The notes beneath the pieces are model-generated. The model was not told the origin of the DNA, made no database searches, and worked only from the letters and a program-made list of their open reading frames with translations. A DNA stretch of 64,000 nucleotides from Syncephalis fuscata S228 (Eukaryota > Fungi > Zoopagomycota): the NCBI GenBank assembly GCA_025786725.1, contig JAHLTZ010000046.1, positions 1-64,000 on the forward strand, given 5' to 3'. The position numbers were made by a program, and so were the translations under genes. Each line of letters opens with the position of its first letter. The stretch's first letter is position 1. Of the stretch, positions 1 to 25,376 are shown one piece after another.

Positions 1-168
1 TGGTGGTGGCAGAACGCTAAATGGTGGTGGCAGAACGGTGGACTGATGGTGGCAGAACGGTGAAATGATGATGGCAGAACGGTGAAATGGTGGTGGCAGA
101 ACGCTAAAATGGTGGTGGCAGAACGGTGGACTGATGGTGGCAGAACGGTGAAATGGTGGTGGCAGAAC
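1..168 (+). repeat. 22-bp minisatellite array R, copy 1 (G-rich on +; runs off the window start)
   Basis: Units are a constant TGGTGGCAGAAC plus a 10-nt variant (GGTGAAATGG, GGTGGACTGA, GGTGGACTGG or GCTAAAATGG). Confidence 0.97.
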
Positions 169-849
169 AGCGGTATTCCACCATCTCACCGTTTTGCCAG
201 TTCACCGTCCTGCCACTACCATTCTGCCATTCCGCCATTCTGCCTTGACAGTCTCTGACTATCGACTATCAGTCTACATTTAAAGCATTTGCCGTTTCTT
301 TGAAGCTACAGGTAAGCATTGTTATGTTTTATTAAATATGTATTATTGTGCGGACAAAGACGGTGTAGCACAAATAGCCATGTACGCTTTTATAATCGGC
401 TGTTTACTATGGTAAGACAACTGGCGCTGCTATGTAATAAATACTTGCTTATTTTTACTTCAAACTACTTACCATTTAATCAACTGTTATTTTTACATAG
501 ATATTTAGGTATGCAGTGTTAGTGTTGCTGTTTGCATTCATGCACTGTGTTTTGTTTTCAAATAATACTAGCTTTTAACAAGATCACAAGCCTTCTTCCT
601 TGCCGTGTTATAATATGGAATAATATAGATTCAAATGAATGGTCAAATAAAGTGTAAAATAATGGCAATAAAGGTATAGTATGCGTATTGCACAAGCAAT
701 CAAGTAAAATATACAAACAATACGGCGAGTAACAAATAAACGAGTTTTATCAATAAGACATGATGAGTATAGTTTAGAATAGAATCAATGGATAAAATAA
801 TAGTGAAGATATACATAGACGATTAAGTAAGTACAATAAATTGAACCTA

Positions 850-1111
850 TAGCAATAAAGCTAGCGGCAATAAAATACCTGCTGTAAATGGGTTGTGCTT
901 ATTATATGATCGATCGATATATGACTTAATAAATACAGAATAGTAATGATATGGGTGGATAGAAGGCATATGCATACTAAATACTAAATCTATAATGACG
1001 AGTATTTTAATGGCTAATGCCATCCACCACACAGTTTCATGCCCAATAGATTGGATGTTGTTAAATTTAGCCATTTATCTTTCAAATCATACTAGATCAT
1101 CAGCAAATTGT
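850..1111 (+). repeat. Copy of dispersed degenerate element E
   Basis: Contains ATATGCATACT..ATA.TAAATCTATAATGAC.AGT.TTTT, then CATG..CAATAG, then TAGCCATTT...CAAATCA...AATTGT. The same motifs occur at 5753, 6122, 19862, 22414 and 22855. Confidence 0.75.
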
Positions 1112-1646
1112 TTAATATTATTATACTAGGCTTAACACAATCAAACCAATCAAACGAACCACTATTGCTATTATTAAAATGACCAGTGTGGGTGTAGCTT
1201 TATAGAATGTAACTATTTTTAGTATACTAGCAGTATAGTACAATTCAAATAATTGAATGGCATAACAAAGCTACTAGACACTATACTAATGTTGATTTAT
1301 AGCATATTTATTTAGTTAAAGGATGCTAAATGTTAAAGCGTTTATAAAAAAGTAGCTGTATTTGCTACTACCTATAATCAGGTTAGGCATGGCATTACAA
1401 TGGGAATCAGCACTATGATATAAGCATCATGTCAAATAGTTGACCTCCATATACACACACATTCAACGATACAAGAAGGCAACAGCAATGGCAATGTCTA
1501 TTAGCGAGTATAAGTACGACAACCACCGCTCGTTATAGTTGCAATGTTGGTGGTAATATTCAACTGACATCAGCGGCGATCAATGTCAATACACGCCAGC
1601 AAGCTGCACATATTAGCTACTGTATTAATAAGCAGTATAGTTAAGC

Positions 1647-1686
1647 AACATACAGCAACATACAGCAGCATACAGCAACATACAGC
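1647..1686 (+). repeat. 10-bp tandem repeat (AGCAACATAC) x4; mirrored at about 12724-12763
   Basis: agcaacatacagcaacatacagcagcatacagcaacatac. Confidence 0.85.
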
Positions 1687-3629
1687 TGTTGAAACGCATG
1701 TTAGTACGCATGCAACACCAGCGATTGATTCTATGCTATAATTACAAAATAAATAGTAGCGTCATTATGGTTGATTGTAATCAAAATACGTGCCGACGGC
1801 CAATATATATTAAATATTGTTAATATTTAATGCTAATATTGCCATTTCTATTTGTGGTGCCTTTTCACGATTTTTCCAACATATGTCAGTTATATGCGCC
1901 AATGCGTCAACGCCATGCGGTTATAGTAGATGCTATTACGTATTTCTAGCTGTATGATTGATAGAATCAAGAATTGGTAAAGTTAATTAATAAAGGCTAT
2001 AATAGTCCTTTTTTTGTTATTTTGACAATAAAAGCCCACACAAATACTAATTAAAAAATGTATCGATTGCTTAATAGATAGCCAATTGCAACTTGACAGT
2101 ATCAATCCCTGTAGCCATAATTGACCGTTAACAATTGCCGTCGATTTGCTAGTTATGTCGGCCAACCAACAGCGTCGGTGACATGATATAATTAATAAAT
2201 ATATTAATGATTGGTATTGCATATAGCTACAGTATGTGTGTAATAGCACAATAGCACGCAATGGTACACCGTCAGCCACACGTGCTGTGAACGGTATGCT
2301 AATCATGTACATTGGTTGTTTTATTAGCATTGGTGGTGGCGTGTATCAAGTATAACCGGCATCATTGGTAGATCATGTTATGCGGCATTGCCACTGGCAA
2401 CTATACAGATGCTATCAGTCATCCGTAATAGTACTGACAATGTTAATGGCTGTGAATGTGTTATACAGACAATGGCGATTTTGGCTACATACCGTATACA
2501 ATTATGTAGTGGAGTGTATAACAATAACAGCCATTGGTATAGTATTGTCCATTGGTGCGCACACCATACTGTTGCTGGTATACAAAAGCAAATCTTATGC
2601 ATAGTCATCAGTTAGTAACAGTGCATATTATGCTGCCACTTGCTAAACGAGCAGACGTTAACTGTCCATGTTATTTGTAGATATGTTTCAAATTGGCAAG
2701 TACCAACACTAGGTTTACTACTTGTGTCGCCAATTACCCAGTAACAACTGGCATGACAATTCTCAATAGCCAGCATTAGTATACATGTTTATATTGACGA
2801 TCGGTAATCTTCAACAGTAATTTCAATTGTGGCATTTATTAAACACAGCTCACTACTGTCGTTGGCAATACAAATAGCAACTATTTTGCCAATTCCTAGT
2901 TGTTGCACTGCAATACATAGCATTGGTTTACAATGGTAGTAAGCTGTATAAATAGCGCTCACTAACTGTTAGTATCGGTAGCTATATCATGCCAATGATG
3001 CACGCAGTATATTCAACACTAACTGTCGACCAGTAACCAGCAATACACAATAACAGATAGCACTAATGTAGCCATATGATTAACTGATACCCATGTTACA
3101 TGTCTATTAACCTATAGCCGGCTATGGAAATAATCAAATATCCATACTTTATCGGTGTTGACGCGCGATTACTAGCATATTGCTTAACAGAATATTGCTA
3201 TACTATTATATTGGCTATTGTTAATCAGTTGATACAGCTAATCAGCAGGTATCCGTAAATACTATGCAACCAGCTAGTCGGTAAACAACATGGATTAATA
3301 GCGTTTGGCCAGCTATATATATATATTGAAAACATGCATGGTGCTTAGTTGTCCATTTGCTAATAGCGTTTGCTATTAATTTCTACTATTTAGATAGATA
3401 TTAACAATACGATCTTGTCAATAGAATAATGCTAATTTCTATAGTAATCATGAGCAATATTACAATGTTGCCATTGCCAGCTAACTAATACAGCTGGCTA
3501 TACGTTGATGGCAACAGTAATTTAATGTTTTCATGTTCACTACTGACCATTGACGGCTGCTTGATTGTTTATTAATGCTTATATATATATTATACAATTA
3601 TCCATGTTAGTAATGTAGCTGTTTATATG

Positions 3630-4620
3630 TTATAATTGATACATATTCATTATATAGCGCTCTGTAATAACGTTCATTGGCACTATTCCAGCGTCAAAAC
3701 TATTAACTTTGTCATAACATCGTTGGAAACTTTAAATAGCTGTATTAGCTCAATATCGATCTGTACCAAAATAGTTGCCATGTACATGCACAATAGTCTT
3801 TTTGTAATGCTCTATAGTCTGCAATACATTAATCGAATGATCTATGTCAAAGTATCACTATCATATCTATATGCTAAATATACTCATACATGTTTTGGTT
3901 ATTGCCAAGGTATGGCCAATTTCACTGTCGACTCGTTTATTGCACCGTTTAATCAATTTACCCATCACATCGGCTTTAATACTAAGAAGCCGTCCCAATC
4001 TTGTTGCCTTCTTTTGAATATGCTTAATTCAACGGAACATTTTACTTTGTTCTGTTTACTTACAAATCAACAACAGCTCATCAATACTACCAATTCCCAG
4101 TTGTAGACTGCCAATAAGCAGTGCAAATCCATCAGATATATCGTCGAAATTACATAATCGATTACGCCAGGTAGAACAACAACATAAGCGATCAGCTACT
4201 GAATACAACGTAATATGCTGTGTGCATGTGACGCTAATCGATGATGAAATAAAATGATACCTTTACGCATCAATGCCACAAATACTGACATTGGTTCTAA
4301 ATAATTAGCACTCTGTGTATTAGTATAGAATGAACGGAAACAGAATAGATCATAGCTACAAGGTAGCTAGCATTTCTTACGTGTATCCTCGAGCTTAATA
4401 GCATCAGTCGTCAATGGATGTATACGGAATATCTAGTATTCAATGTACTTTAATTCTGATTAATTGTCTATTCTATATCATTCATTAACAAATGCACGTA
4501 TTTCTGAATCAGTGGATGTTACTGCATCCACTTGGAACAAAGCTTTGCGCAATAGATTGGCTGTCTAGTGTATATCCATTAATATTATGGCTTCATTTTT
4601 CGCAGAAGCAATGCAGCTTT
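3630..4620 (-). pseudogene. Decayed CorA-family Mg2+ transporter (ALR1/MNR2-like), arm A copy
   Basis: Mirror of the 9790-10780 copy, with the same in-frame stops. Confidence 0.85.
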
Positions 4621-5399
4621 TCAATAATGCTGTCGCCGCATATTTGAACTAATATCAACCGACATTGCTGAAGCAAAGCTGTTACACCGGTCAGCTGTAC
4701 TTAATAGCGCTAATCAAATTCAACATCCTCCAGTCATAAATCCAATTTTCAGCGCTTGTATACAAATTTAATTGAGCAGTGCCGCGTATTGTATAGAAGT
4801 GGTCGCTGATCTAGCCGTTATTGGCATATTACGCCATAAATAAGCTGACAGTCTAAATTAACCACCAACAAAAGCTGTCGATTGAATAATCCTTGTAACT
4901 TCAAAATAAACAAAACACGGATTTACCAGAATATACATATACAATACAGTTTAATGATTTGTAGCGGCGTGTAGCAATAGCTGACGGCGTAATAAAAATC
5001 TCGACCCAATTAACAAGCGTGCTTATATACCACAAAAGGCTATGTAGCCGCTGCAACAACTGTAGCTTGCTATTTACAAATATTCAACAGCATAGAAGAA
5101 GCCATGCTGAATAGACTGAATGAAAGTAGACATGAACGACAAGCGGCAGATCTTACAACAAATAAAGCTACTAACAAGTGAACCACTGTAACAAACTGCG
5201 CACGTTTATTAGAAAACAAAGCACTACGCAATAAGACGAGTAGACACGCTAAAGTGTATAGACAGGAAAGTAACTGCTGCAGTGTATATGGACCAATGAG
5301 AGATAAAAAGGAATGAGCTGAGCTTTACAACCAATAGACCTAGCGCCAAATAAACAGCAGTTTTGAGTAGCGCATGGCTATCATATGACAGAACGATAC

Positions 5400-6270
5400 A
5401 GAATGAAACGAATATATAAAGTAAAAAGTATGAATAGCAGTGGTATAGCTACTAAGCATATATGCATGAGTGAATGAGCGACATTAGTCGACATTTATAA
5501 ATAATAAAGCTAGAACAGAAATAAACATATTTTTTGGATAGAGCAAGGCTATACGAGTATAGAGTGATGTATAGAATGATAAATGTACGGTAAGAAAGCA
5601 TGTAAAACGACATCAAAGCTATAGTGTATATAGCGCAATGAATGGAGAGAGAAAAGTGTATTGGGACAAACAGATGATAGAATGTACCTAGTATGTTATA
5701 AAATGGTATATAGAGGTGTGGGATATAAAAGAATGGTATACGTGAATAGAGGATATATGCATACTGGATAATGAATCTATAATGATGAGTATTTTGATGA
5801 TAGACGTCACTCACCGCCCATCATCATGTTCAATAGACTGGATGTTATTAAAAATAGTCATTTGACCACCAAGCAAACAACAAATGCGATGATGTGATAT
5901 TAAACAAAACCACCATTGTCCCATGTTCATAGAATAGATGTCTAGTTCAGTTACGCGATTATTATTAAAAAGTCATTTAACACAAATTATAATAAAGCTA
6001 TAGCGCACTGAGTGGACTGAGTGAAGCTGATTGAAATGCATAATAAATATAAAGTGTTCAACCTGTCATTGACTAATAGTAGGATGTAAAGATACAATTT
6101 AATGATATTATTAGATTAAAAATATATGCATACTAAATAATAAATCTATGATGGCGGTATTTTGGACCCTGACGTCAGGTACTTTTAATTTCATGTTCAC
6201 TAGAACGTGTGTGTAGGTCAGTTGCGCGAATACTATTAAATGTAGTCATCTAACACTAAATTGCAATTAT
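5400..6270 (+). repeat. Long copy of element E with internal sub-repeats, spanning the arm A / loop 1 boundary
   Basis: Clearly similar but diverged relative to 22100-22935, for example AATAAAGCTATA.CGCACTGAG.GGACTGAGTGAAGCTGATTGAAATGC at 5991 and about 22724. Confidence 0.85.
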
Positions 6271-8512
6271 CATTTAATTAAAAAACATTTTTTTTATAAA
6301 CATTCAAATTATTCTGCCCACTTAACCGGCTTAGAAGTCAAAGAACACCAACTGTAAATATGCTGTACCCTTTATTATGTTTTGAGGTTTTAAAGCTGTC
6401 TTTATCTTCAATTAATCTCTAAAAATTTAAAGTAATTATGGTTTTATAAGCTTAATATTTGCTAATTCGACGCATTTATAAAGTCGAATTTTAAACAAAA
6501 GCAATGCCATTTGCTAGTGCATAAACTATATTTTTGGAATAAAACTAGTATTTTTGTGAATAAAGAACTAATCAAACAGTTATTCTCTAAACATCATGAC
6601 CGCGAATAAATCACGTTGTCCAACGTGTGGAAAGGGTTTTCCGTCGTTAGCCAGCCGTAGGAAGCACGACTTTGAAGAACACAAGGCACAAATAAACGTA
6701 TGGAAAGGTGAAGGTAAGTAATGTAGCTACGACTGAATAAATCAATCCACTTAACGATCTTCTACGACAGAACTACTTTTTGTTTGTACTAAACAGATGG
6801 GCGTTTTGGATGTCCGTTTAAAAATTGCACTGGCAGTTGCGCTACAACGGAAGGATTCAAAAAGCATCTAAAAAAGCACGAAGCTTATATTACTTATTTC
6901 GAGATGGAAAACAAGGAAGCTCAAGTCGGAGCAAAACGACTTTATCAAGATGATAAAAAAGCGACAAGCTTTAAAAACAGTGATGACGACGTATCACTGT
7001 TCACCAAAAAAAAGCAGAAGATTGGAAAGGAGCTATATTCTACTCCTACTCCTACTCATAGCACACCACTGGCGGATGCATCGCTTTCCTACGATGATGC
7101 AATTCTTAGTGCATTCAACGCGCTTCAAGCGTCGCCAAAATGCCAACAGAAGGCAAAACTAGTTGCAAAATCTAGCAAGTTACATCCTCTGTCGCTCACA
7201 ACTGGAGATGGGCGTTCAACGTTTCACGTGCTGGCTGTCTCTGAAGCAATCTCACGGATTCTCTTTGCTCAGCCAAAAGGGGAAATTATTGCACCACTGA
7301 TTACACCCTCAGCAGCAGACAATGCCTGCCTTAATAGTAGCAAGACAGCTGACAACCGTTTACGTCATTGCTTGCAACATGGGCTGTTTGGTGAAAAACT
7401 GAAACAATGTGACATCATTGAAATGAACGATGAAATCGCCGAGCTATTACAAAGAGACTGGCATATTTGGCCACAAATGCGCTACGTATCAGCGCAATTA
7501 TTCAGCAATGCTATACTTGTTGAAGATAAGCAAATTCTACTGATCAACTGCGTGGAGGCGTACGGCCGCAGATGTACCATCGATGTACATCATGAGACAG
7601 CGTGGCGTTCACCATCTGTGCCAGATGATGACGACCTTCGCTATAATGGAATTAAAGTTGTGGTGGACACATACAACAACTCAAAAAGACTGTTAATAGG
7701 AACGCATTCTTCAAATCTTCTTGTGACGTCGAGTGTCCTATTAAGAAATAATCAACAGATTATCCAGCTCGGCCCAGTACAAAGGACATTAGTCTAAAAG
7801 ATCCACGGGTTTATTTGGACTCTAAAAGCATTGAAAAATCAATATGCCTTTTCAATAAGGGCAATAAATGTTGTCACATTGATTATCTTGATTCATGTCA
7901 CAGTTACGCCAGGTTCGGTCGAAGTTCCATTGTCCTTCGACATACACACTTTGCCGCTCAAGCTCAGCGGCAACCAATTCTGTCACTCGCCGCCCTTTTA
8001 CCATTTGGACATTGGCGGACTATGAAATTTCTCGATTAACACAAGCAAAAATCGGATCGCAGTTGTTCCAAACAATTGCAACTGCTGTAATCAATAATGG
8101 CGAAAGGCCAAGCTTCAAATGTCAGATGTGCAAAACATTGCAAACCAATGCAAAGAAGATAAAGTCTTGGTGTTCATAAAGCTTATTCTTAAACAGTTCG
8201 ACGGCCAAGATCATATTCTAATTATCGGCAACAAGATATTGGACACACATCTGCAAGGCTTAGCAAACATTGTTACAGGAAGTTTAAGCGATGCAAACAA
8301 GGCGGTAAAGAAAGAACTGTCTAAAATATTTCAAAAATAATTAATGCAATGCTATCTTATTCAGCTGTCTTGTTTGTATTAAAGCTATCGCATTAACATT
8401 AAACGACTTATTGACCATTTATTATAATTTGTGTTAAATGATTTTTTAATAATATTGCGTAATTGGACTACACATCTATTCTACTAAAGATAGGGACAAA
8501 TGGTGAGTTTTA
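5905..8512. other. Loop 1: unique 2.6-kb spacer of palindrome 1
   Basis: Lies between the near-identical arms. Its core is single-copy in the window. Confidence 0.93.
6596..8340 (+). CDS. Spliced gene for a ~550-aa protein with two N-terminal C2H2 zinc fingers and an unrecognised C-terminal domain (3 apparent single-base deletions)
   Basis: Exon 1 (6596-6713) reads MTANKSRCPTCGKGFPSLASRRKHDFEEH. A GTAAGT intron from 6714 to AG 6796 (or AG 6770 plus one indel) joins in frame to CPFKNCTGSCATTEGFKKHLKKH (6811-6879) and ORF 6904..7797. ORFs 7815, 7895 and 8119 overlap in successive -1 frames up to the stop at 8340. Basic NLS-like stretch KRLYQDDKK...KKKQK. Confidence 0.8.
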
Positions 8513-11500
8513 TTTAATATCACATCATCGCATTTGTTGTTTGCTTGGTGGTCAAATGACTATTTTTAATAACATCCAGTCTATTGAACATGATGATGGG
8601 CGGTGAGTGACGTCTATCATCAAAATACTCATCATTATAGATTCATTATCCAGTATGCATATATCCTCTATTCACGTATACCATTCTTTTATATCCCACA
8701 CCTCTATATACCATTTTATAACATACTAGGTACATTCTATCATCTGTTTGTCCCAATACACTTTTCTCTCTCCATTCATTGCGCTATATACACTATAGCT
8801 TTGATGTCGTTTTACATGCTTTCTTACCGTACATTTATCATTCTATACATCACTCTATACTCGTATAGCCTTGCTCTATCCAAAATATGTTTATTTCTGT
8901 TCTAGCTTTATTATTTATAAATGTCGACTAATGTCGCTCATTCACTCATGCATATATGCTTAGTAGCTATACCACTGCTATTCATACTTTATATATTCGT
9001 TTCATTCTGTATCGTTCTGTCATATGATAGCCATGCGCTACTCAAAACTGCTGTTTATTTGGCGCTAGGTCTATTGGTTGTAAAGCTCAGCTCATTCCTT
9101 TCTTATCTCTCATTGGTCCATATACACTGCAGCAGTTACTTTCCTGTCTATACACTTTAGCGTGTCTACTCGTCTTATTGCGTAGTGCTTTGTTTTCTAA
9201 TAAACGTGCGCAGTTTGTTACAGTGGTTCACTTGTTAGTAGCTTTATTTGTTGTAAGATCTGCCGCTTGTCGTTCATGTCTACTTTCATTCAGTCTATTC
9301 AGCATGGCCTTCTTCTATGCTGTTGAATATTTGTAAATAGCAAGCTACAGTTGTTGCAGCGGCTACATAGCCTTTTGTGGTATATAAGCACGCTTGTTAA
9401 TTGGGTCGAGATTTTTATTACGCCGTCAGCTATTGCTACACGCCGCTACAAATCATTAAACTGTATTGTATATGTATATTCTGGTAAATCCGTGTTTTGT
9501 TTATTTTGAAGTTACAAGGATTATTCAATCGACAGCTTTTGTTGGTGGTTAATTTAGACTGTCAGCTTATTTATGGCGTAATATGCCAATAACGGCTAGA
9601 TCAGCGACCACTTCTATACAATACGCGGCACTGCTCAATTAAATTTGTATACAAGCGCTGAAAATTGGATTTATGACTGGAGGATGTTGAATTTGATTTA
9701 GCGCTATTAAGTACAGCTGACCGGTGTAACAGCTTTGCTTCAGCAATGTCGGTTGATATTAGTTCAAATATGCGGCGACAGCATTATTGAAAAGCTGCAT
9801 TGCTTCTGCGAAAAATGAAGCCATAATATTAATGGATATACACTAGACAGCCAATCTATTGCGCAAAGCTTTGTTCCAAGTGGATGCATAACATCCACTG
9901 ATTCAGAAATACGTGCATTTGTTAATGAATGATATAGAATAGACAATTAATCAGAATTAAAGTACATTGAATACTAGATATTCCGTATACATCCATTGAC
10001 GACTGATGCTATTAAGCTCGAGGATACACGTAAGAAATGCTAGCTACCTTGTAGCTATGATCTATTCTGTTTCCGTTCATTCTATACTAATACACAGAGT
10101 GCTAATTATTTAGAACCAATGTCAGTATTTGTGGCATTGATGCGTAAAGGTATCATTTTATTTCATCATCGATTAGCGTCACATGCACACAGCATATTAC
10201 GTTGTATTCAGTAGCTGATCGCTTATGTTGTTGTTCTACCTGGCGTAATCGATTATGTAATTTCGACAATATATCTGATGGATTTGCACTGCTTATTGGC
10301 AGTCTACAACTGGGAATTGGTAGTATTGATGAGCTGTTGTTGATTTGTAAGTAAACAGAACAAAGTAAAATGTTCCGTTGAATTAAGCATATTCAAAAGA
10401 AGGCAACAAGATTGGGACGGCTTCTTAGTATTAAAGCCGATGTGATGGGTAAATTGATTAAACGGTGCAATAAACGAGTCGACAGTGAAATTGGCCATAC
10501 CTTGGCAATAACCAAAACATGTATGAGTATATTTAGCATATAGATATGATAGTGATACTTTGACATAGATCATTCGATTAATGTATTGCAGACTATAGAG
10601 CATTACAAAAAGACTATTGTGCATGTACATGGCAACTATTTTGGTACAGATCGATATTGAGCTAATACAGCTATTTAAAGTTTCCAACGATGTTATGACA
10701 AAGTTAATAGTTTTGACGCTGGAATAGTGCCAATGAACGTTATTACAGAGCGCTATATAATGAATATGTGTCGATTATAATATATAAACAGCTACATTAC
10801 TAACACGGATAATTGTATAATATATATATAAGCATTAATAAACAATCAAGCAGCCGTCAATGGTCAGTAGTGAACATGAAAACATTAAATTACTGTTGCC
10901 ATCAACGTATAGCCAGCTGTATTAGTTAGCTGGCAATGGCAACATTGTAATATTGCTCATGATTACTATAGAAATTAGCATTATTCTATTGACAAGATCG
11001 TATTGTTAATATCTATCTAAATAGTAGAAATTAATAGCAAACGCTATTAGCAAATGGACAACTAAGCACCATGCATGTTTTCAATATATATATATAGCTG
11101 GCCAAACGCTATTAATCCATGTTGTTTACCGACTAGCTGGTTGCATAGTATTTACGGATACCTGCTGATTAGCTGTATCAACTGATTAACAATAGCCAAT
11201 ATAATAGTATAGCAATATTCTGTTAAGCAATATGCTAGTAATCGCGCGTCAACACCGATAAAGTATGGATATTTGATTATTTCCATAGCCGGCTATAGGT
11301 TAATAGACATGTAACATGGGTATCAGTTAATCATATGGCTACATTAGTGCTATCTGTTATTGTGTATTGCTGGTTACTGGTCGACAGTTAGTGTTGAATA
11401 TACTGCGTGCATCATTGGCATGATATAGCTACCGATACTAACAGTTAGTGAGCGCTATTTATACAGCTTACTACCATTGTAAACCAATGCTATGTATTGC

Positions 11501-14241: not shown

Positions 14242-15210
14242 GTTCTGCCACCACCATTTCACCGTTCTGCCACCACCATTTCACCGTTCTGCCACCACCA
14301 TTTTACGTTCTGCCACCACCATTTTAGCGTTCTGCCACCACCATTTTAGCGTTCTGCCACCACCAGTCCACCGTTCTGCCACCACCATTTCACCGTTCTG
14401 CCACCATCAGTCCACCGTTCTGCCACCACCATTTCACCGTTCTGCCACCACCATTTTAGCGTTCTGCCACCACCATTTCACCGTTCTGCCACCACCATTT
14501 TAGCGTTCTGCCACCACCATTTTAGCGTTCTGCCACCACCAGTCCACCGTTCTGCCACCACCAGTCCACCGTTCTGCCACCACCAGTCCACCGTTCTGCC
14601 ACCATCAGTCCACCGTTCTGCCACCACCAGTCCACCGTTCTGCCACCATCAGTCCACCGTTCTGCCACCACCAGTCCACCGTTCTGCCACCATCAGTCCA
14701 CCGTTCTGCCACCATCAGTCCACCGTTCTGCCACCACCATTTTAGCGTTCTGCCACCACCATTTCACCGTTCTGCCACCACCATTTCACCGTTCTGCCAC
14801 CACCATTTCACCGTTCTGCCACCACCAGTCCACCGTTCTGCCACCACCATTTTAGCGTTCTGCCACCACCATTTCACCGTTCTGCCATCACCACTTCACC
14901 GTTCTACCACCACCATTTCACCGTTCTGCCACCACCATTTCACCGTTCTGCCACCACCATTTCACCGTTCTGCCACCACCATTTCACCGTTCTGCCACCA
15001 CCATTTTAGCGTTCTGCCACCACCATTTCACCGTTCTGCCACCACCATTTCACCGTTCTGCCACCACCATTTCACCGTTCTGCCACCATCAGTCCACCGT
15101 TCTGCCACCACCAGTCCACCGTTCTGCCACCACCATTTCACCGTTCTGCCACCACCATTTCACCGTTCTGCCACCACCATTTCACCATTTTGCCACCACC
15201 ATTTTACCGT
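14242..15210 (-). repeat. 22-bp minisatellite array R, copy 2 (about 44 units, C-rich on +)
   Basis: Tandem GTTCTGCCACCA followed by CCATTTCACC, CCATTTTAGC, CCAGTCCACC or TCAGTCCACC. Confidence 0.98.
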
Positions 15211-18200
15211 TGAACAATTGAACGGTTGAACCGTCGGACTCACTTCCACCACTTTTGACTCCACTCTCTTTTCATTCCTTTTAGTGAACATAAAATTAAA
15301 GTACCTGACATCTGGGTCCAAAATACCATCATCATAGATTTATTATCCAGTATGCATATATTTTTAATCCAACAATATCATTAAGATGTATCTTTACATC
15401 CTACTCTTAGTCAATGACAGGTTGAACACTTATATTTATTATGCATTTCAATCAGCTTCACTCAGTCCGCTCAGTGCGTTATAGCTTTATTATAGTTATT
15501 TTTATTATTAATAACTGTTTATTACAATTATTAACCATTTAATGTGATTTGTGTCAAATGGCTACTTTTGATATTCGCGCAACTGGCCTGCACATTTGTT
15601 CTATTGAACATGGGGACGGGTGGTGAGTTTTATTAACGATCAAATCATCACATTTGGTGTGATTTGGTGGTTAAATGGCTATTTTGATTATTTACGCGTT
15701 TGAACTAAACATTCAACCTATTGAACATGGAGCTGGGTGGTGAGCGACATCAAAGTTTAAAACACTTGTCATTATAGATTTATTATCCAGTATGCATATA
15801 TCTCTATCTACCTACACCACTCCCTTTTATTCCGCACTTCTATGTATCATTCTACGACATACTGGACACATTCTGTTCATTAAGCACACCAGCAACTCTA
15901 CTCATTCCCTCCTTGCGTTATATGCACTATAGTTTGACATCGTTTTATATGTCATTTTACACTCGCCCATCTATGCTCAATCCAAAACTGGTTTTATTTT
16001 TGTTCTAGCGTTATTATTAACAACTGTCGACTAATGTCGCTCATTGATCATGCATATATGCTCAGTAACTATACCACTGCTGTCCATACTTTTTACTTTG
16101 TATATTCGTTTTATTATCCAGTAAATACGCGCTAGCTATTACCGTTGTCTGTTTGGTTCTAGCACCACTATTAGAAAAGTTCACGCAAGTTGCTTATCTG
16201 CTCATGCATATATGCTCGATAGCTTTAACAAAGCTAGTTGTCTTTTAACTAGCATAGCTGATAGCTGTTATGCTATTTTACCGTACAGTTACTATGCGCC
16301 ATCAATAACTACTGTCAGCTTGACGCCAGCTTTAATATTGACAAGTTTGACTCGTTCCGCTTAGTCATTCCTTTCCAAGGCGCACTATAGCTTTAATGCT
16401 GCTACTCACACAATTACTTTTGGTATTTTATTTGCTCCATATTATTGTATGCTTAATGGCTATGCTTTATTTGCAGAAGCTATACGTTCCTTGTTAGCTG
16501 TTTGTTGCAAAGTTTAGCTCTGAGCACTTCTTTTACTCTTTGCACACAAACGCGCAAGTAGAATAGCCTTCTTACACTGCTAGTGCTCTTTTTGCTGTTT
16601 TCCAGTGCTGATATGTTGCAATGGTATCGAACGGGCCAGCGATGAACTGGTATAAGCTATTATACCAAATAAAGCTTGTTATTACAAAATAGATATTCGC
16701 TATGGGTGTTATGTATACGGCTTTAAAAGTGTCGTATAGCTTATTGCAGGTAATCATGTATTGCGCTATAGCTACTTGAGCACAAGGACAAAGTGTACGT
16801 ATATTTACCATGTGGCCGTAGACAGTGCTGGCTACTCTATTCGACACAGTTAAAAGCAATAATAAACTTGGCCAAAAACAATTTGCTTTAAAGATTTTAT
16901 TAGATGGATTGCATTAGTATTCAACATATAAGCCATTGGTATTTACTGTAGCTACAAGCTTGAAACTGGTCCCATTTAGCTGCTTTGCGTGCCGCCTAAA
17001 TGATCGGCATTGTTTGAAATAAAGCCATAGCTGATATTGCCAAATAGACAGATTTACTTGCTATGCTACATGTAAAGTTTAGCATAGATCATTTTTACGC
17101 TTAGTCGGTTAAGCCGTGTAATCTAGATTTAATCCATCAGCTTATCGCGTTGTAAAGAGCTTGCCAATATTAATGTTCAGACAATATAATGACAGCAATA
17201 AAGACTGTTTTGCAATAAGTGTACAAGAAAACACACGGTTTACTACATATTACACTAATAGTTACATGTACTGAAGATTCTACTGGAATGGTTGTAGCTG
17301 CTTATACGGAAGACTAAGAGCAATTGCGTAGTACATTGGTCATAGACGGTTTTAGACGACTCATGTTTTATTACGACATTTTCCACAACTATCACAATAC
17401 ATAAGCTGGCTTTACCGCTCCTCCGAACCAACATTGCACCTTTATCTTCTCTTTCTACTCTTTACCACTCGATATACGCTACACTCATTCGCCCTTACTG
17501 CCATTTGTTGTCCAATATGCTTTGCACTTGCTAGCCGTCTAATGATTACAAGATCACTGCTGGTTGCTGCTATATGTACTAAGGTCGGTAAACGGGCGTG
17601 GGAGGTGCGATGCAGTTGTGCCTTTTGGCTATGAAGCACTGGATATGCAGTGTTCTAGAAGCTATATATCACGCAGTGTGTACCCCAGCATGCTGTAGAA
17701 GGCGCTTGTCTGCACATAGTTGATTGGTCTTTTGTATAGTAACATTGGTACGCTTACCGTGTGTTTGTTTGCGAGGTTGCCTTGCTGAGTATCTGGCTGT
17801 TGAGGCGACATAAGGTTTGCGCTTGAAGATATCTGATATCTGATGGTGCAGAGCAAATGTTGTTTGGACAACCACTACTTATTGCGGTGTAGTCAAGCAG
17901 CAAACATCATTGGCACATGTGGCTCATCTCGTTTACTGACCCTCTTCAATAGATATAGATTTAAGCGATATTTAGATTTGGCAAGAACAGGGCCACAATA
18001 TGCTGTACAGTCATCCGGTTTGTACTAGTCTATCATTATTTATGTATTTCTTTGTTTAAATAAATAAATGTAGCATTTCTTATTTATTAACATACTACTA
18101 TTAGTTGCGTTCATATAAATACAGACATCTTCCCATTTAATAATAGTACTAGTTGTTTCTGCTATTGTTATTACACTGATAATAAACAACCTATTAAGCC

Positions 18201-18431
18201 ATTGAATGTGCTTTGAAGGCAAACGATTAAATTTGATGCATCCATGCAGTTGAGCTAGACAATTGCTCTGTTGAACATAATACGAGTGGTGAGTGAATCA
18301 AAGTTTAAAATATTTATTGGCATAGATGTATTATCCAGTACGCTTATATCCAACATTTACTTGTATCATTCGTCTATTATCGCATACTATTATGTATTAT
18401 TCTACAATACACTAGCCGCATTCTGGTTATT
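15211..18431 (+). repeat. Arm B: inner left arm of palindrome 2
   Basis: Reverse complement of 19781-23004. Position p pairs with about 38212-p, for example ORF 17843..18028(+) with 20184..20369(-). Confidence 0.97.
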
Positions 18432-19780
18432 TATGCGGCAACACACCTCACTCATCTCAACTATTACGCTGTACATTCACTAAATTGTATGCTGTTTATT
18501 GTATAACGCATAAGAGCTATGCAACGCCATTGTTGTTTTGATTCCAGATCTATTATTAAATAAGTGCTCTTTTATGTTTTAGCGCTTTTGGCATCGGAAA
18601 GGCGCTGTAGCATTAACACCATTTGTGCGGGCGCTTGAATGGCCATATTGGTACACTGTAGCTTTAGTACTGTAGATTTGACATAGATATTATATACTTT
18701 ATATTTATAGAGTGTTGTTATATATTGTTATACAGTATATTGGCCACACTACATCGATTGGCGTTGTCCATTTTACCCTAGCTTTATCTTTAAAGTTGGC
18801 CACTTATTACACTCATTTTGCTAATGCCCATGTTACACGGTTACAATTAGACATACTAGAAAATTAACAGTAAATTAACTAAAAATATACTGCAGTCCAA
18901 TTGATTCTGCCTACTCAAACGACAATTATGGCCATACTAAGCCAATAAAATGAGATGTGCAAATACTTAGTATTTTATCCAGAATTGTACATGCATATCA
19001 GAGTAATATTGGTTAAATATTGGTATAAATAATAAGTATACAGATAAATTTGTTTATTTACTGATGTAGTTTGTTTATTATGATAGTGCATTGATCAGTG
19101 TATGGTATATTGGCTATTAGCTATCAATTCAGCCTATTCTAGTGCAGCCACTGTAGCCACTGTAGCCATTTCAGCTAAGGGCCGCTTAGTATGGTCCTCG
19201 CAGGTCATTACTTGTATTTCAGCTACTGTATTTTGTTTATTTTACGTAGTTTTACGTAGTTTACGCATCACTTGCTTCCCTGCGTTGCTTCTACGTATTT
19301 GTCTATGTAATAGTGCACTGCACACCATACTTGCTCCATTTCACTTATGTTGGCCTCAGTCCACACTGTATATCGCTCAGTACCTTCCCAACAGTCCCAC
19401 TTTTTGATATGAATATATAACAGCATCAAAAGCTAAGTTGAGATAAACCCAAGGTTTAAAGCTGTGAGCCAACCATTGCACCATTTCCGGTTGGCCTTGC
19501 CATTGCTGTGAATACGCATTGTTCCGTTGATCAGCACCAAAGCCATTGCTAATTGACAACAGCTGGTTTGTCTACCAGAAGGTTAAACAGCGTGGATGTG
19601 CATGAGCAAAATAGTTTAATTTTATTAATGATAAAGCTAGTGCAAAAATAAATATGGTTGGATAGATGAAGGATGGACGATAATAAAATGATATGTAGAA
19701 TAGCAAATGTACGGTAAAAAACATAAAAGCAGTGTCAAACAGTGTATATAGCGTAATGAGCAAAGTATATTGCCGCATGT
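18432..19780. other. Loop 2: unique 1.35-kb AT-rich spacer of palindrome 2
   Basis: No credible intact ORF. Both edges are remnants of element E in inverted orientation. Confidence 0.92.
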
Positions 19781-22700
19781 AATAACCAGAATGCGGCTAG
19801 TGTATTGTAGAATAATACATAATAGTATGCGATAATAACGAATGATACAAGTAAATGTTGGATATAAGCGTACTGGATAATACATCTATGCCAATAAATA
19901 TTTTAAACTTTGATTCACTCACCACTCGTTATTATGTTCAACAGAGCAATTGTCTAGCTCAACTGCATGGATGCATCAAATTTAATCGTTTGCCTTCAAA
20001 GCACATTCAATGGCTTAATAGGTTGTTTATTATCAGTGTAATAACAATAGCAGAAACAACTAGTACTATTATTAAATGGGAAGATGTCTGTATTTATATG
20101 AACGCAACTAATAGTAGTATGTTAATAAATAAGAAATGCTACATTTATTTATTTAAACAAAGAAATACATAAATAATGATAGACTAGTACAAACCGGATG
20201 ACTGTACAGCATATTGTGGCCCTGTTCTTGCCAAATCTAAATATCGCTTAAATCTATATCTATTGAAGAGGGTCAGTAAACGAGATGAGCCACATGTGCC
20301 AATGATGTTTGCTGCTTGACTACACCGCAATAAGTAGTGGTTGTCCAAACAACATTTGCTCTGCACCATCAGATATCAGATATCTTCAAGCGCAAACCTT
20401 ATGTCGCCTCAACAGCCAGATACTCAGCAAGGCAACCTCGCAAACAAACACACGGTAAGCGTACCAATGTTACTATACAAAAGACCAATCAACTATGTGC
20501 AGACAAGCGCCTTCTACAGCATGCTGGGGTACACACTGCGTGATATATAGCTTCTAGAACACTGCATATCCAGTGCTTCATAGCCAAAAGGCACAACTGC
20601 ATCGCACCTCCCACGCCCGTTTACCGACCTTAGTACATATAGCAGCAACCAGCAGTGATCTTGTAATCATTAGACGGCTAGCAAGTGCAAAGCATATTGG
20701 ACAACAAATGGCAGTAAGGGCGAATGAGTGTAGTGTATATCGAGTGGTAAAGAGTAGAAAGAGAAGATAAAGGTGCAGTGTTGGTTCGGAGGAGCGGTAA
20801 AGCCAGCTTATGTATTGTGATAGTTGTGGAAAATGTCGTAATAAAACATGAGTCGTCTAAAACCGTCTATGACCAATGTACTACGCAATTGCTCTTAGTC
20901 TTCCGTATAAGCAGCTACAACCATTCCAGTAGAATCTTCAGTACATGTAACTATTAGTGTAATATGTAGTAAACCGTGTGTTTTCTTGTACACTTATTGC
21001 AAAAGAGTCTTTATTGCTGTCATTATATTGTCTGAACATTAATATTGGCAAGCTCTTTACAACGCGATAAGCTGATGGATTAAATCTAGATTACACGGCT
21101 TAACCGACTAAGCGTAAAAATGATCTATGCTAAACTTTACATGTAACATAGCAAGTAAATCTGTCTATTTGGCAATATCAGCTATGGCTTTATTTCAAAC
21201 AATGCCGATCATTTAGGCGGCACGCAAAGCAGCTAAATGGGACCAGTTTCAAGCTTGTAGCTACAGTAAATACCAATGGCTTATATGTTGAATACTAATG
21301 CAATCCATCTAATAAAATCTTTAAAGCAAATTGTTTTTGGCCAAGTTTATTATTGCTTTTAACTGTGTCGAATAGAGTAGCCAGCACTGTCTACGGCCAC
21401 ATGGTAAATATACGTACACTTTGTCCTTATGCTCAAGTAGCTATAGCGCAATACATGATTACTCTGCAATAAGCTATACGACACTTTTAAAGCACGTATA
21501 CATAACACCCATAGCGAATATCTATTTTGTAATAACAAGCTTTATTTGGTATAATAGCTTATACCAGTTCATCGCTGGCCCGTTCGATACCATTGCAACA
21601 TATCAGCACTGGAAAACAGCAAAAAGAGCACTAGCAGTGTAAGAAGGCTATTCTACTTGCGCGTTTGTGTGCAAAGAGTAAAAGAAGTGCTCAGAGCTAA
21701 ACTTTGCAACAAACAGCTAACAAGGAACGTATAGCTTCTGCAAATAAAGCATAGCCATTAAGCATACAATAATATGGAGCAAATAAAATACCAAAAGTAA
21801 TTGTGTGAGTAGCAGCATTAAAGCTATAGTGCGCCTTGGAAAGGAATGACTAAGCGGAACGAGTCAAACTTGTCAATATTAAAGCTGGCGTCAAGCTGAC
21901 AGTAGTTATTGATGGCGCATAGTAACTGTACGGTAAAATAGCATAACAGCTATCAGCTATGCTAGTTAAAAGACAACTAGCTTTGTTAAAGCTATCGAGC
22001 ATATATGCATGAGCAGATAAGCAACTTGCGTGAACTTTTCTAATAATGGTGCTAGAACCAAACAGACAACGGTAATAGCTAGCGCGTATTTACTGGATAA
22101 TAAAACGAATATACAAAGTAAAAAGTATGGACAGCAGTGGTATAGCTACTGAGCATATATGCATGATCAATGAGCGACATTAGTCGACAGTTGTTAATAA
22201 TAACGCTAGAACAAAAATAAAACCAGTTTTGGATTGAGCATAGATGGGCGAGTGTAAAATGACATATAAAACAATGTCAAACTATAGTGCATATAACGCA
22301 AGGAGGGAATGAGTAGAGTGTGCTGGTGTGCTTAATGAACAGAATGTGTCCAGTATGTCGTAGAATGATACATAGAAGTGCGGAATAAAAGGGAGTGGTG
22401 TAGGTAGATAGAGATATATGCATACTGGATAATAAATCTATAATGACAAGTGTTTTAAACTTTGATGTCGCTCACCACCCAGCTCCATGTTCAATAGGTT
22501 GAATGTTTAGTTCAAACGCGTAAATAATCAAAATAGCCATTTAACCACCAAATCACACCAAATGTGATGATTTGATCGTTAATAAAACTCACCACCCGTC
22601 CCCATGTTCAATAGAACAAATGTGCAGGCCAGTTGCGCGAATATCAAAAGTAGCCATTTGACACAAATCACATTAAATGGTTAATAATTGTAATAAACAG

Positions 22701-23004
22701 TTATTAATAATAAAAATAACTATAATAAAGCTATAACGCACTGAGCGGACTGAGTGAAGCTGATTGAAATGCATAATAAATATAAGTGTTCAACCTGTCA
22801 TTGACTAAGAGTAGGATGTAAAGATACATCTTAATGATATTGTTGGATTAAAAATATATGCATACTGGATAATAAATCTATGATGATGGTATTTTGGACC
22901 CAGATGTCAGGTACTTTAATTTTATGTTCACTAAAAGGAATGAAAAGAGAGTGGAGTCAAAAGTGGTGGAAGTGAGTCCGACGGTTCAACCGTTCAATTG
23001 TTCA
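19781..23004 (-). repeat. Arm B': inner right arm of palindrome 2
   Basis: Reverse complement of 15211-18431. Confidence 0.97.
22100..22935 (+). repeat. Long copy of element E next to the minisatellite (mirror at about 15280-16110)
   Basis: Three sub-repeats containing (C/T)ATGTTCA(A/C)TA; homologous to 5400-6205. Confidence 0.85.
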
Positions 23005-24192
23005 ACGGTAAAATGGTGGTGGCAAAATGGTGAAATGGTGGTGGCAGAACGGTGAAATGGTGGTGGCAGAACGGTGGACTGATGGTGGCAGAACGGTGGA
23101 CTGATGGTGGCAGAACGGTGGACTGATGGTGGCAGAACGGTGAAATGGTGGTGGCAGAACGGTGAAATGGTGGTGGCAGAACGGTGAAATGGTGGTGGCA
23201 GAACGGTGAAATGGTGGTGGCAGAACGGTGAAATGGTGGTGGCAGAACGGTGGACTGATGGTGGCAGAACGGTGGACTGGTGGTGGCAGAACGGTGGACT
23301 GGTGGTGGCAGAACGCTAAAATGGTGGTGGCAGAACGCTAAAATGGTGGTGGCAGAACGGTGAAATGGTGGTGGCAGAACGGTGAAATGGTGGTGGCAGA
23401 ACGGTGAAATGGTGGTGGCAGAACGGTGAAATGGTGGTGGCAGAACGGTGAAATGGTGGTGGCAGAACGGTGGACTGGTGGTGGCAGAACGGTGAAATGG
23501 TGGTGGCAGAACGGTGGACTGGTGGTGGCAGAACGGTGGACTGGTGGTGGCAGAACGGTGGACTGGTGGTGGCAGAACGCTAAAATGGTGGTGGCAGAAC
23601 GCTAAAATGGTGGTGGCAGAACGCTAAAATGGTGGTGGCAGAACGGTGAAATGGTGGTGGCAGAACGGTGAAATGGTGGTGGCAGAACGGTGAAATGGTG
23701 GTGGCAGAACGGTGGACTGATGGTGGCAGAACGCTAAAATGGTGGTGGCAGAACGGTGAAATGGTGGTGGCAGAACGGTGAAATGGTGGTGGCAGAACGG
23801 TGGACTGATGGTGGCAGAACGGTGGACTGGTGGTGGCAGAACGGTGAAATGGTGGTGGCAGAACGGTGGACTGGTGGTGGCAGAACGGTGAATGGTGGTG
23901 GCAGAACGGTGGACTGATGGTGGCAGAACGGTGAATGGTGGTGGCAGAACGGTGGACTGGTGGTGGCAGAACGGTGAAATGGTGGTGGCAGAACGGTGGA
24001 CTGATGGTGGCAGAACGGTGAAATGGTGGTGGCAGAACGGTGGACTGGTGGTGGCAGAACGCTAAAATGGTGGTGGCAGAACGGTGAAATGGTGGTGGCA
24101 GAACGCTAAAATGGTGGTGGCAGAACGGTGAAATGGTGGTGGCAGAACGCTAAAATGGTGGTGGCAGAACGGTGGACTGGTGATGGCAGAAC
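23005..24192 (+). repeat. 22-bp minisatellite array R, copy 3 (about 54 units, G-rich on +)
   Basis: Same four unit variants as copy 2, with a different order and length. Confidence 0.98.
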
Positions 24193-25135
24193 AGTGGTAT
24201 TCCACCATCTCACCGTTTTGCCAGTCCACCGTCCTGCCACTACCATTCTGCCATTCCGCCATTCTGCCTTGACAGTCTCTGACTATCGACTATCAGTCTA
24301 CATTTAAAGCATTTGCCGTTTCTTTGAAGCTACAGGTAAGCATTGTTATGTTTTATTAAATATGTATTATTGTGCGGACAAAGACGGTGTAGCACAAATA
24401 GCCATGTACGCTTTTATAATCGGCTGTTTACTATGGTAAGACAACTGGCGCTGCTATGTAATAAATACTTGCTTATTTTTACTTCAAACTACTTACCATT
24501 TAATCAACTGTTATTTTTACATAGATATTTAGGTATGAAGTGTTAGTGTTGCTGTTTGCATTCATGCACTGTGTTTTGTTTTCAAATAATACTAGCTTTT
24601 AAAAAGATCACAAGCCTTCTTCCTTGCCGTGTTATAATATGGAATAATATAGATTCAAATGAATGGTCAAATAAAGTGTAAAATAATGGCAATAAAGGTA
24701 TAGTATGCGTATTGCACAAGCAATCAAGTAAAATATACAAACAATACGGCGAGTAACAAATAAACGAGTTTTATCAATAAGACATGATGAGTATAGTTTA
24801 GAATAGAATCAATGGATAAAATAATAGTGAAGATATACATAGACGATTAAGTAAGTACAATAAATTGAACCTATAGCAATAAAGCTAGCGGCAATAAAAT
24901 ACCTGCTGTAAATGGGTTGTGCTTATTATATGATCGATCGATATATGACTTAATAAATACAGAATAGTAATGATATGGGTGGATAGAAGGCATATGCATA
25001 CTAAATACTAAATCTATAATGACGAGTATTTTAATGGCTAATGCCATCCACCACACAGTTTCATGCCCAATAGATTGGATGTTGTTAAATTTAGCCATTT
25101 ATCTTTCAAATCATACTAGATCATCAGCAAATTGT
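24193..25135 (+). repeat. Truncated third copy of arm A (A1): direct repeat of 169-1111 at offset 24,024
   Basis: Identity ends at CAGCAAATTGT|ATAAC, compared with CAGCAAATTGT|TTAAT at 1111. Confidence 0.96.
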
Positions 25136-25376
25136 ATAACAATGCTAAACGGAAATACAGCACAGCACACATATTAGTGCAATAACATTAATAGAAATAA
25201 ACTACAAACAAGTTAAGTAATTAGATGTCATATTTATCATTAATATAAAGTATAAAAATAATTAATAGAAACTATAGATTATTATTAATTAATTACAATA
25301 AAGAATATTAAGTTAAATCATTATTAATTAATAAAACAATCCATTTATTTAATATATAAAGGTTACAAACACTTTG

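Follow-up and report, generated by a model that had tools for sequence, protein, structure and literature searches.

In laboratory yeast and in human disease, inverted triplications joined at interrupted inverted repeats are familiar as recently arisen copy-number changes under selection; at the yeast ODIRA junctions the spacers measure a few bases and the inverted repeats tens of bases. Other large inverted architectures are also generally known. The ampliconic palindromes of primate sex chromosomes have kilobase-scale arms that are more than 99.7% identical around a unique spacer, and several related palindromes occur together. The Foldback (FB) elements of Drosophila have long inverted arms with variable tandem outer ends, an arm length that varies by copy and an optional loop. 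The 2-micron plasmid and plastid genomes follow the order unique, inverted repeat, unique, inverted repeat. Inverted-repeat regional centromeres, such as those of Schizosaccharomyces pombe and Candida tropicalis, combine a core of 2–5 kb with homogenized inverted repeats of several kilobases and are repeated genome-wide.

Here, we report an analysis of a 64,000-nucleotide window at the beginning of a 150-kb contig (C313) of the fungus Syncephalis fuscata, whose assembly comprises 29.4 Mb in 371 contigs. The first 25 kb of the window consist of two giant adjoining palindromes, whose modules follow the order R (a 22-bp minisatellite), A, loop 1, A', R', B, loop 2, B', R and A1, after which unique DNA begins; self-comparison bears out the four-part layout that a first-pass annotation had read from the sequence. 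On contig C304, B' passes into A over only ~1.5 units of the 22-mer, and B'-R-A can therefore be treated as one contiguous segment, S, of ~10.6 kb. Written in S units, this stretch reads S, loop 1, S', loop 2, S, which is an inverted triplication with an inverted middle copy; the contig begins inside the first copy, and the third is truncated. We consider that this unit is probably a chromosomal, essentially non-coding palindromic amplicon and one copy of a multicopy S. fuscata repeat family. Its features are as follows.

1–168, + strand: R copy 1, the 22-bp minisatellite, 7.7 units by TRF, top strand G-rich, incomplete because the contig begins inside it
169–245, + strand: degenerate inverted 22-mers that open A head-to-head with R, identified by reading the sequence and kept in all A copies
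169–5996, + strand: A, the left arm of palindrome 1, non-coding, from self-comparison
945–1076 and 5732–5863, within A (+ strand): copies of a dispersed element of ~132 bp
5900–5996, + strand: inner zone of arm A, with 87% inverted identity to 8418–8517, a candidate pre-existing inverted repeat at the fold-back site
5997–8417, + strand: loop 1, 2.4 kb, most of it filled by one gene
6596–8340, + strand: the loop-1 gene, BDF19DRAFT_486166
8418–14241, − strand: A', the right arm of palindrome 1, from self-comparison
14242–15211, − strand: R', the second copy of R, 44 units by TRF, C-rich strand on top
15212–18441, + strand: B, the left arm of palindrome 2
18442–19769, + strand: loop 2, 1.3 kb
19770–23003, − strand: B', the right arm of palindrome 2
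23004–24196, + strand: R copy 3, 54 units by TRF, G-rich strand on top
24197–25139, + strand: A1, the third copy of A, truncated (equivalent to A positions 169–1115)

In the self-comparison, positions 4–5996 match 8418–14406 as the reverse complement with 99.2% identity over 6,001 nt (E = 0), and 14242–18441 match 19770–23972 in the same manner with 97.7% identity over 4,206 nt (E = 0); nearly all mismatches of the latter, the B/B' match, fall inside the 22-bp array. When the arrays are left out, 11 substitutions separate A from A' (169–5899) and nine separate B from B', and the arm divergence is ~0.2–0.3% in both palindromes (99.7–99.8% identity outside R). Owing to this equal divergence, the three copies of S look equally old. 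A direct repeat of 1–1115 at 24024–25139 (97.5%, E = 0) gives a period of 24,023–24,024 bp, which confirms the previously noted return to the start after 24,024 bp, and the end of the third copy, first placed at 25135, was located at 25135–25139. The previously given boundaries of the inverted block at 8513 and 18431 are the ends of the perfect arms; weaker inverted homology extends to 8418 and ~18490. The variants at 24195, 24538 and 24602/3, taken to be private to the third copy, are real, and those at 24538 and 24603 recur on C267 alone, which is a second assembly of this junction.

The anatomy of the palindrome centers is informative about how the unit may have formed. At the center of palindrome 1 the arms are perfect up to 5899/8518; 97 bp of 87% identity follow, and then a loop without homology. 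Global alignment gives the same gradation, with 98/100 identities up to 5899, 87/100 in the next stretch and no homology beyond it. The center of palindrome 2 is graded likewise, with ~75–80% inverted homology in the first ~55 bp on each side of loop 2. In the 5900–5996 zone the arm-specific differences show an identical pattern on C26, C99, C217 and C263, which indicates that the palindrome formed once and was multiplied later. The breakpoints coincide with copies of the one ~132-bp dispersed element. A1 ends 39 bp past the core of this element in a non-homologous join to unique DNA, with microhomology of a few bases at most; the junction is present on both C313 and C267, the latter being its second assembly, and the flank at 25140–34000 has no similarity to the unit.

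The diverged zones at both centers are what would remain if interrupted inverted repeats already in place had served for fold-back or template switching, as in ODIRA. Because the ancestral unduplicated arrangement 'loop2-S-loop1' was not found in the assembly, we can only infer that these repeats existed beforehand, and poor gene conversion near the loop could have produced the diverged zones instead. Like the ODIRA triplications at yeast SUL1 and in human inverted CNVs (PMC4689423), the unit has three copies with the middle one inverted, and both junctions are of equal age. Nevertheless, it departs from them in several respects. The first is size, with spacers of 1.3 and 2.4 kb and inverted repeats of 55–97 bp. 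The second concerns the third copy, which is truncated at a non-homologous junction (A position 1115) and lacks loop 1 and the original distal flank. Moreover, the unit has since been multiplied to many copies, its arms hold no selectable gene, and an origin or an extrachromosomal intermediate is only hypothetical here. The ODIRA-type origin suggested in the first-pass annotation thus agrees with the fold-back signature expected at both centers, but not with the third copy, which lacks the run-on into loop 1 and the original flank predicted by simple ODIRA integration.

The same modules are found on at least 15 other contigs, and every single adjacency recurs on 3–9 contigs. C26 carries a second full unit, and its sequence continues beyond one period, with a third A copy that reaches at least position 2259 of A. 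The arrangement A-loop1-A' occurs on C313, C26, C99, C217 and C263, giving five full loop-1 copies in the genome, all 99% identical. B-loop2-B' is found on at least nine contigs (C313, C26, C206, C216, C220, C225, C304, C159 and C237), A'-R'-B on C313, C26, C99, C82 and C350, and B'-R-A on C313, C26, C206, C216 and C220. There are at least seven haplotypes of arm A, whose variants are shared in a mosaic. The arms of C99 are identical over 3,177 sites, whereas those of C313 and C26 differ at 9/3,177 each. Two large contigs, C304 (187 kb) and C320 (110 kb), begin within the repeat family, and a solo A'-R'-B lies inside the 819,655-bp contig C350, at 466.9–476.7 kb. Most of the other members are on short contigs (5–25 kb) that end in R, some of them with ends of raw-read quality; the short contigs may be partly redundant, and the assembly does not fix the number of units or whether they are tandem or dispersed.

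The family also has older layers. Some copies are only 88–96% identical, and other module arrangements occur, including the joins A-X-B and B'-A without R. Within the unit itself, A 5402–6205 and B 15279–16115 share 72.7% identity as the remains of an older duplication. The core of B (15528–18404) recurs in dispersed form, in at least 20 copies of 86–98% identity on many contigs, and loop 2 belongs to a repeat family of ~80% identity, with tandem copies on C35. C89 holds a related gene-less palindrome of 5.4 kb, whose center consists of head-to-head R units. The additional arrangements, the older copies and the solo copy on C350 fit a long-resident chromosomal repeat family. In the Logan contigs from four small runs of one sample, matches fall on A1 only and on none of the 5 kb of flank; this fits a multicopy A and runs against a single genomic copy of A, R and B.

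The R arrays occupy the outer ends of the arms, where their neighbors are always B and A. All of the ~15 arrays differ in length (5–73 units) and in unit order, with four unit variants interspersed. We considered R as a telomere repeat, and the R/A boundary as a telomere fusion, and rejected both, since perfect R dimers are restricted to contigs of the repeat family, four variants are present and only ~1.5 units remain on C304; in addition, four contigs open with the G-rich strand, opposite to the polarity of a telomere. Searches for a telomere motif were negative both for three consecutive TTAGGG units (one mismatch allowed) and for three TAGGG boxes at a spacing of 1–8 bases. A telomerase RBD gene is present in the genome.

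Coding content is confined to loop 1. BDF19DRAFT_486166 encodes a protein of 372 amino acids from exons 6596–6712 and 6796–7797, and further conserved C-terminal pieces lie at 7892–8176 and 8098–8337, with a possible frameshift near 8100–8170. The protein has two C2H2 fingers and a conserved domain without a Pfam family, and it belongs to a widely distributed zinc-finger family; its closest homologs in two other fungal assemblies are ordinary genes with no inverted repeats around them. Foldseek gave no match, and a weak likeness of the fold to AAG glycosylase (VIA-align, Z 7.3) lies within the range of chance best matches and serves as a lead only. A role as the recombinase of the element was discarded, since Pfam gives C2H2 only and the homologs elsewhere are ordinary genes. 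The proposal that the unit depends on the loop-1 protein is likewise implausible for a widespread host family whose homologs lack inverted repeats, and we regard the loop-1 gene as ordinary cargo. The earlier observation that the unit contains no transposase, recombinase or polymerase agrees with our searches, which found no such domain. Apart from the loop-1 C2H2, the ORF pieces of A, B and the loops gave no Pfam match, the unit contains no replication, recombination or partition gene, and no rRNA, tRNA or other known RNA was found in it.

A chromosomal amplicon family with these properties may have arisen in four steps. An older, partly tandem repeat region would have contained S adjoining the loop-1 gene and the loop-2 repeat. 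Fold-back, or a leading-to-lagging-strand template switch, would then have occurred at short, diverged interrupted inverted repeats around loops 1 and 2, themselves probably derived from the dispersed element; by ODIRA-class or break-induced fold-back chemistry, S would have been copied in inverted orientation to give two palindromes of equal age. Subsequently, the whole higher-order unit may have been multiplied through unequal or ectopic recombination or break-induced replication. Finally, gene conversion would homogenize the copies in patches while the R arrays mutate quickly, and recombination between arms could invert the loops. The other copies are presumably chromosomal as well, and the family would seem to have no function beyond carrying the loop-1 gene. 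The unit resembles primate ampliconic palindromes in its nearly identical kilobase-scale arms, unique spacers and related palindromes, and the data are consistent with gene conversion between the arms and inversion of the spacers; it differs in that its arms are non-coding repeat DNA, its sole gene is in a spacer, the palindromes alternate with a 24-kb period and the host is a fungus. RIP-like mutation of the arms was discarded, as their dinucleotide ratios equal those of the flank, and a genome-wide loss of hairpin-opening factors was dismissed as the cause of the palindromes, as Sae2/CtIP and Mre11 domains are present.

The alternative that survives best, though still unlikely, holds that a ~24-kb extrachromosomal inverted-dimer circle, or the hairpin-ended linear form that precedes it, persists, that the window contains a copy recombined into a resident R-A1 module and that the short contigs are free variants. 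The four-part layout recalls the 2-micron plasmid and plastid genomes, and the assembly contains both relative loop orientations, loop 1 (+)/loop 2 (+) on C313 and loop 1 (+)/loop 2 (−) on C26; the link between the loops requires reads longer than 10.5 kb, and this difference could be an assembly choice. The length of C26, 25,290 bp, is one period plus ~1.2 kb, as assemblers produce for circles, but its final 2 kb are of raw-read quality, which makes the overlap of its ends uncheckable. The ODIRA signature at the junctions and the clean junction to unique DNA of only one young copy would also suit a circle. A is over-represented among the read-derived contigs, but not clearly above the ~14–19 assembled copies, and contig adjacencies would be identical for a circle and a tandem array. 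Unlike the 2-micron plasmid and plastid genomes, the unit has no recombinase, replication or partition gene, its only gene being an ordinary family member, and it is anchored to chromosomal unique DNA. Its many sequence variants, with at least seven arm haplotypes and R arrays that all differ, would be unusual for a single plasmid lineage, and the A-X-B and R-less B'-A joins, the solo copy in the 820-kb contig and the old diverged copies likewise speak against a circle. No observation points specifically to a free circular or hairpin-ended molecule, past or present, such as had been put forward. We find it quite improbable that a gene-poor 24-kb circle or 12-kb hairpin-ended 'dog-bone' is maintained while encoding no protein for replication or recombination, changes orientation through recombination between its arms and inserts into chromosomes; if it were, the replicon would be the wild counterpart of the ODIRA intermediate, so far seen only as an engineered or transient form.

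It is also doubtful that the palindromes are two adjacent FB-like transposable elements, capped by variable tandem repeats, with loop 1 coding for their own zinc-finger, glycosylase-like enzyme. The arms do finish in a variable minisatellite like those of Drosophila FB elements, related gene-less palindromes such as that on C89 exist, and the loop-1 protein joins DNA-binding fingers to a domain weakly similar to AAG glycosylase. However, chance alone can give a fold match of that quality, and the nearest homologs of the protein are the ordinary genes described above. No separately placed whole palindrome with flanks of its own or a target-site duplication was found, R adjoins B and A on all contigs, and the tandem array is common to two adjacent palindromes of opposite polarity. 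In addition, the flanks of the palindromes are inverted copies of each other, which insertion would not yield.

We similarly give little credence to the array having a chromosomal function, most likely that of an inverted-repeat regional centromere or of a subtelomeric domain shared between chromosomes, with selection keeping the palindromes. In favor of such a domain, the array is nearly gene-free and repeated, with homogenized inverted repeats of several kilobases around a core as in regional centromeres; three contigs longer than 100 kb begin in the array, and the flank contains duplicated and decayed secreted-enzyme genes, as do many subtelomeres. On the other hand, the base composition of the unit equals that of the flank (35–38% G+C), anchoring is limited to three large contigs, R does not qualify as a telomere repeat and no telomere motif was identified. 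In contrast to regional centromeres, the cores here are not chromosome-specific: the loop-1 copies are all 99% identical, one of the cores carries an intact gene and the copy pattern is not obviously one per chromosome.

It is very unlikely that the order and orientation of the modules are partly an artifact of arbitrary joining between near-identical inverted repeats that exceed the length of many reads, and that the true locus is simpler. The assembly, of the long-read type, does contain 1-bp indel errors, R is where many of its short contigs break off with ends of raw quality, and the loop 1–loop 2 link, for which reads must exceed 10.5 kb, is also where C313 and C26 conflict. Yet the arms are not identical, their substitutions are shared as a mosaic with other contigs, the single adjacencies recur as described, and the path from loop 2 to the unique flank spans just 5.4 kb. 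Missed-adapter or amplification chimeras, which are perfect palindromes without a loop, were dismissed, as substitutions shared with other contigs separate the arms here, which pass through a diverged zone into a loop of 1.3–2.4 kb, one of the two loops bearing an intact gene.

In the probable chromosomal amplicon family of S. fuscata, a wild fungus of an early-diverging lineage, the architecture of an inverted triplication is fixed and multiplied as a higher-order repeat. The family accounts for the failure to join ~15 short contigs, and the ends of three large ones, in the assembly. If the proposed mechanism of formation holds, errors at replication forks or by fold-back can build long-lived repeat domains, beyond transient amplicons, and the family would provide natural junctions at which the tolerance, homogenization and inversion of palindromes may be studied.

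The window, positions 1–64000 of contig C313 in a 29.4 Mb assembly of 371 contigs, begins with a 24-kb unit for which the first-pass annotation had claimed the order R A loop1 A' R' B loop2 B' R A1. Self-comparison of the window matches this layout exactly and gives a unit period of 24,023–24,024 bp. In the layout, R is a 22-bp minisatellite (R' when inverted), A/A' and B/B' are the arms of palindromes 1 and 2, and A1 is a third, partial A.

Modules of the 24-kb unit in the window
1–168: R copy 1, 22-bp minisatellite, cut off by the contig start; G-rich on the top strand
169–5996: A
5997–8417: loop 1
8418–14241: A'
14242–15211: R', 44 units
15212–18441: B
18442–19769: loop 2
19770–23003: B'
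23004–24196: R copy 3, 54 units
24197–25139: A1

Past 25139, the end of A1, the DNA is dissimilar to the unit. With the minisatellite set aside, 11 substitutions and a few 1-bp indels separate A from A' between 169 and 5899, and nine substitutions separate B from B'; arm divergence is thus about 0.2–0.3% in both palindromes. A search of the window for Rfam families, rRNA and tRNA included, found none, and the ORF pieces from A, B and the loops gave no match to a Pfam family.

The relation of these modules becomes clear on contig C304 (C-numbers denote contigs of the same assembly), where B' passes directly into A with only ~1.5 copies of the 22-mer in between. B', R and A thus form a single contiguous segment of ~10.6 kb, here termed S, in which R is a minisatellite that has expanded. 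The 24-kb unit then consists of S, loop 1, S inverted and loop 2, and in the window S is present as an inverted triplication. A telomeric identity of R was rejected on its distribution (perfect dimers are confined to contigs of the palindrome family), its four interspersed unit variants, the copy of ~1.5 units lying within continuous sequence, and its strand, the G-rich strand being found at the starts of C313, C26, C99 and C267. The genome carries a telomerase RBD gene (C328:679971–680530); neither TTAGGG runs of three units with one mismatch allowed nor three TAGGG boxes spaced 1–8 bases apart occur in the assembly. Contigs probably break in R because the copies have nearly the same flanks but different R arrays. 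Beside A1, the order of unit variants differs between 23004–24196 of the window and 1–338 of C267, two assemblies of one locus.

Genome-wide searches were performed with A, B plus loop 2, loop 1 and R as queries, and the contigs fetched were then mapped. Modules of the unit are present on at least 15 other contigs. The complete order R-A-loop1-A'-R'-B-loop2-B'-R-A recurs on C26 (25,290 bp), whose third A extends to at least A position 2259. Loop 1 is spanned with both arms on C99, C217 and C263, and loop 2 on C206, C216, C220, C225, C159, C237 and C304, while the junction of R, A1 and flank seen in the window is found again on C267. A solo A'-R'-B lies at 466.9–476.7 kb of C350 (819,655 bp), the starts of C304 (187 kb) and C320 (110 kb) fall inside the family, and older copies of 88–96% identity occur on C89, C320, C304, C86 and C203. 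Over 3,177 shared columns, A falls into at least seven substitution haplotypes whose variants are shared as a mosaic; across these columns the two A arms of C99 are identical, and those of C313 and of C26 each differ at nine sites. The R arrays all differ in length (5–73 units) and in how the four unit variants are ordered. By such differences, the family copies do not read as assembly duplicates. Furthermore, C313 and C267 have the private variants of A1 in common and an identical flank, yet R differs; variation of the minisatellite inside the culture that was sequenced seems likely. Logan contigs (four small runs of one sample) fell on A1 only, with none on 5 kb of flank, and at 24538 they lack the A1-private base and carry the family majority base in its place. 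This pattern fits a many-fold over-representation of A relative to unique DNA, although such depths are not copy numbers.

Older repeat layers underlie the unit. A dispersed element with a core of ~132 bp recurs in diverged form at least 25 times on other contigs, and every breakpoint adjoins a copy of it: the A end at loop 1, the B ends at R and loop 2, and the A1 end (25139).

Dispersed-element core in the window
945–1076: core copy
5732–5863: core copy
6100–6163: core copy
15320–15383: core copy
15708–15812: core copy
18286–18431: core copy

Positions 5402–6205 of A match the reverse complement of B 15279–16115 at 72.7%, an older layer; 22100–22936 is a further partner of 5402–6205. Within S, this duplication of ~0.85 kb lies as direct repeats on either side of R and the A body. 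The layer suggests a ~6.5-kb direct tandem repeat as the original form of the family. The core of B is itself a dispersed repeat of at least 20 copies, loop 2 is a member of a repeat family that is tandemly arrayed on C35, and on C237, C159 and C320 a 1.3-kb piece, X, links A to B in an alternative join. Taken together, the 72.7% layer, the dispersed B core, the loop-2 family, the X joins and the C89 palindrome described below show an old, repeatedly rearranged repeat region. On C35 (655802–659411), the repeat is ~80% similar to loop 2 and forms four tandem copies spaced ~845 bp apart; single copies lie on five more contigs. C89 carries at 443–5874 a 5.4-kb palindrome built from an older copy (91.6%) of A 3355–5796, with 5 + 7 R units head-to-head at its centre. 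Head-to-head units of this type persist, in degenerate form, at 150–245 of the window.

The palindrome centres bear on how the unit formed. The arms around loop 1 match perfectly as far as 5899/8518, after which identity falls to 87%, with small indels, for 97 bp and homology then ends; around loop 2 they match perfectly as far as 18431/19781, followed by ~55 bp of homology at ~75–80%. The arm-specific bases of the loop-1 zone are identical on C313, C26, C99, C217 and C263, and hence the palindrome arose once and was later multiplied as a unit. Near-identical arms, a short diverged inverted repeat and a unique spacer are the trace that fold-back or template switching would leave. Fold-back priming, or switching from the leading- to the lagging-strand template, would have taken place at pre-existing interrupted inverted repeats; the short diverged repeats would be the two original copies with their differences kept, and all outside them newly copied. 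[quoted passage not shown] The equal arm divergence of both palindromes is compatible with one event or with amplification of the already completed unit. The earlier proposal of an ODIRA-class inverted duplication with concatemer-like periodicity is supported in part: the junction anatomy speaks in favour, but the third copy does not conform. Under the full scenario this copy would extend across loop 1 and on into the flank of the original locus, whereas copy 3 ends at A position 1115, in a joint where microhomology amounts to a few bases at most. The joint could stem from a later deletion or break-induced event, or from spread of the array into a partial copy that already existed. The relative orientation of loops 1 and 2 also differs between C313 and C26, which could be produced by arm-to-arm recombination or by an assembler short of reads longer than 10.5 kb.

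The protein annotated in loop 1 (BDF19DRAFT_486166, Syncephalis fuscata, on a 150,201-bp contig) has 372 residues and two C2H2 fingers, with its stop at 7797. An exhaustive profile-free search returned 317 relatives at E ≤ 0.001, mostly of 450–600 residues, which combine C2H2 fingers with a ~230-residue domain that has no Pfam family. Their C-terminal part matches 7892–8176 (E 1e-24) and 8098–8337 (E 2e-11) in two other frames, past the annotated stop, and so the gene probably extends through the loop to ~8340 (6596–8340), probably spliced differently from the annotation or carrying a frameshift or assembly indel. The annotated model looks truncated, with an unannotated intron and a frameshift or assembly indel near 8100–8170 implied. 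AlphaFold2, with an alignment of 57 relatives, gave a pLDDT of 79.6, and Foldseek matched the fingers only. The top VIA-align match of the model, human AAG glycosylase (Z 7.3, r.m.s.d. 3.5 Å, 109 residues), lies within the range of chance best hits and does not establish an enzyme identity. Homologues in two other fungal assemblies lie among ordinary genes, without inverted repeats; the gene is therefore read as cargo between inverted repeats rather than as the machinery of the unit.

The flank contains ordinary fungal genes: GH5 cellulases, BAHD acyltransferases, a subtilase and MRP-S25. A BAHD-type gene is tandemly duplicated at 93.8% (42782–44522 and 45196–46945), the downstream copy being an intact 442-residue ORF and the upstream one having only a 180-residue open piece. 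Two GH5 fragments on the minus strand (38706–39368 and 48248–49057) and a subtilase split across two overlapping ORFs (51440–53400) form a cluster of duplicated or decayed secreted-enzyme genes adjoining the repeat unit.

A free circle or hairpin-ended dog-bone form of the unit, present or past, as first suggested for it, is a less likely possibility, and no such form was seen. On balance, the evidence points to a family of palindromic amplicons that has long resided in the chromosomes: copies are anchored in large contigs, haplotypes are numerous, modules are joined in alternative ways, old copies persist, and the unit yielded no replication or recombination gene.
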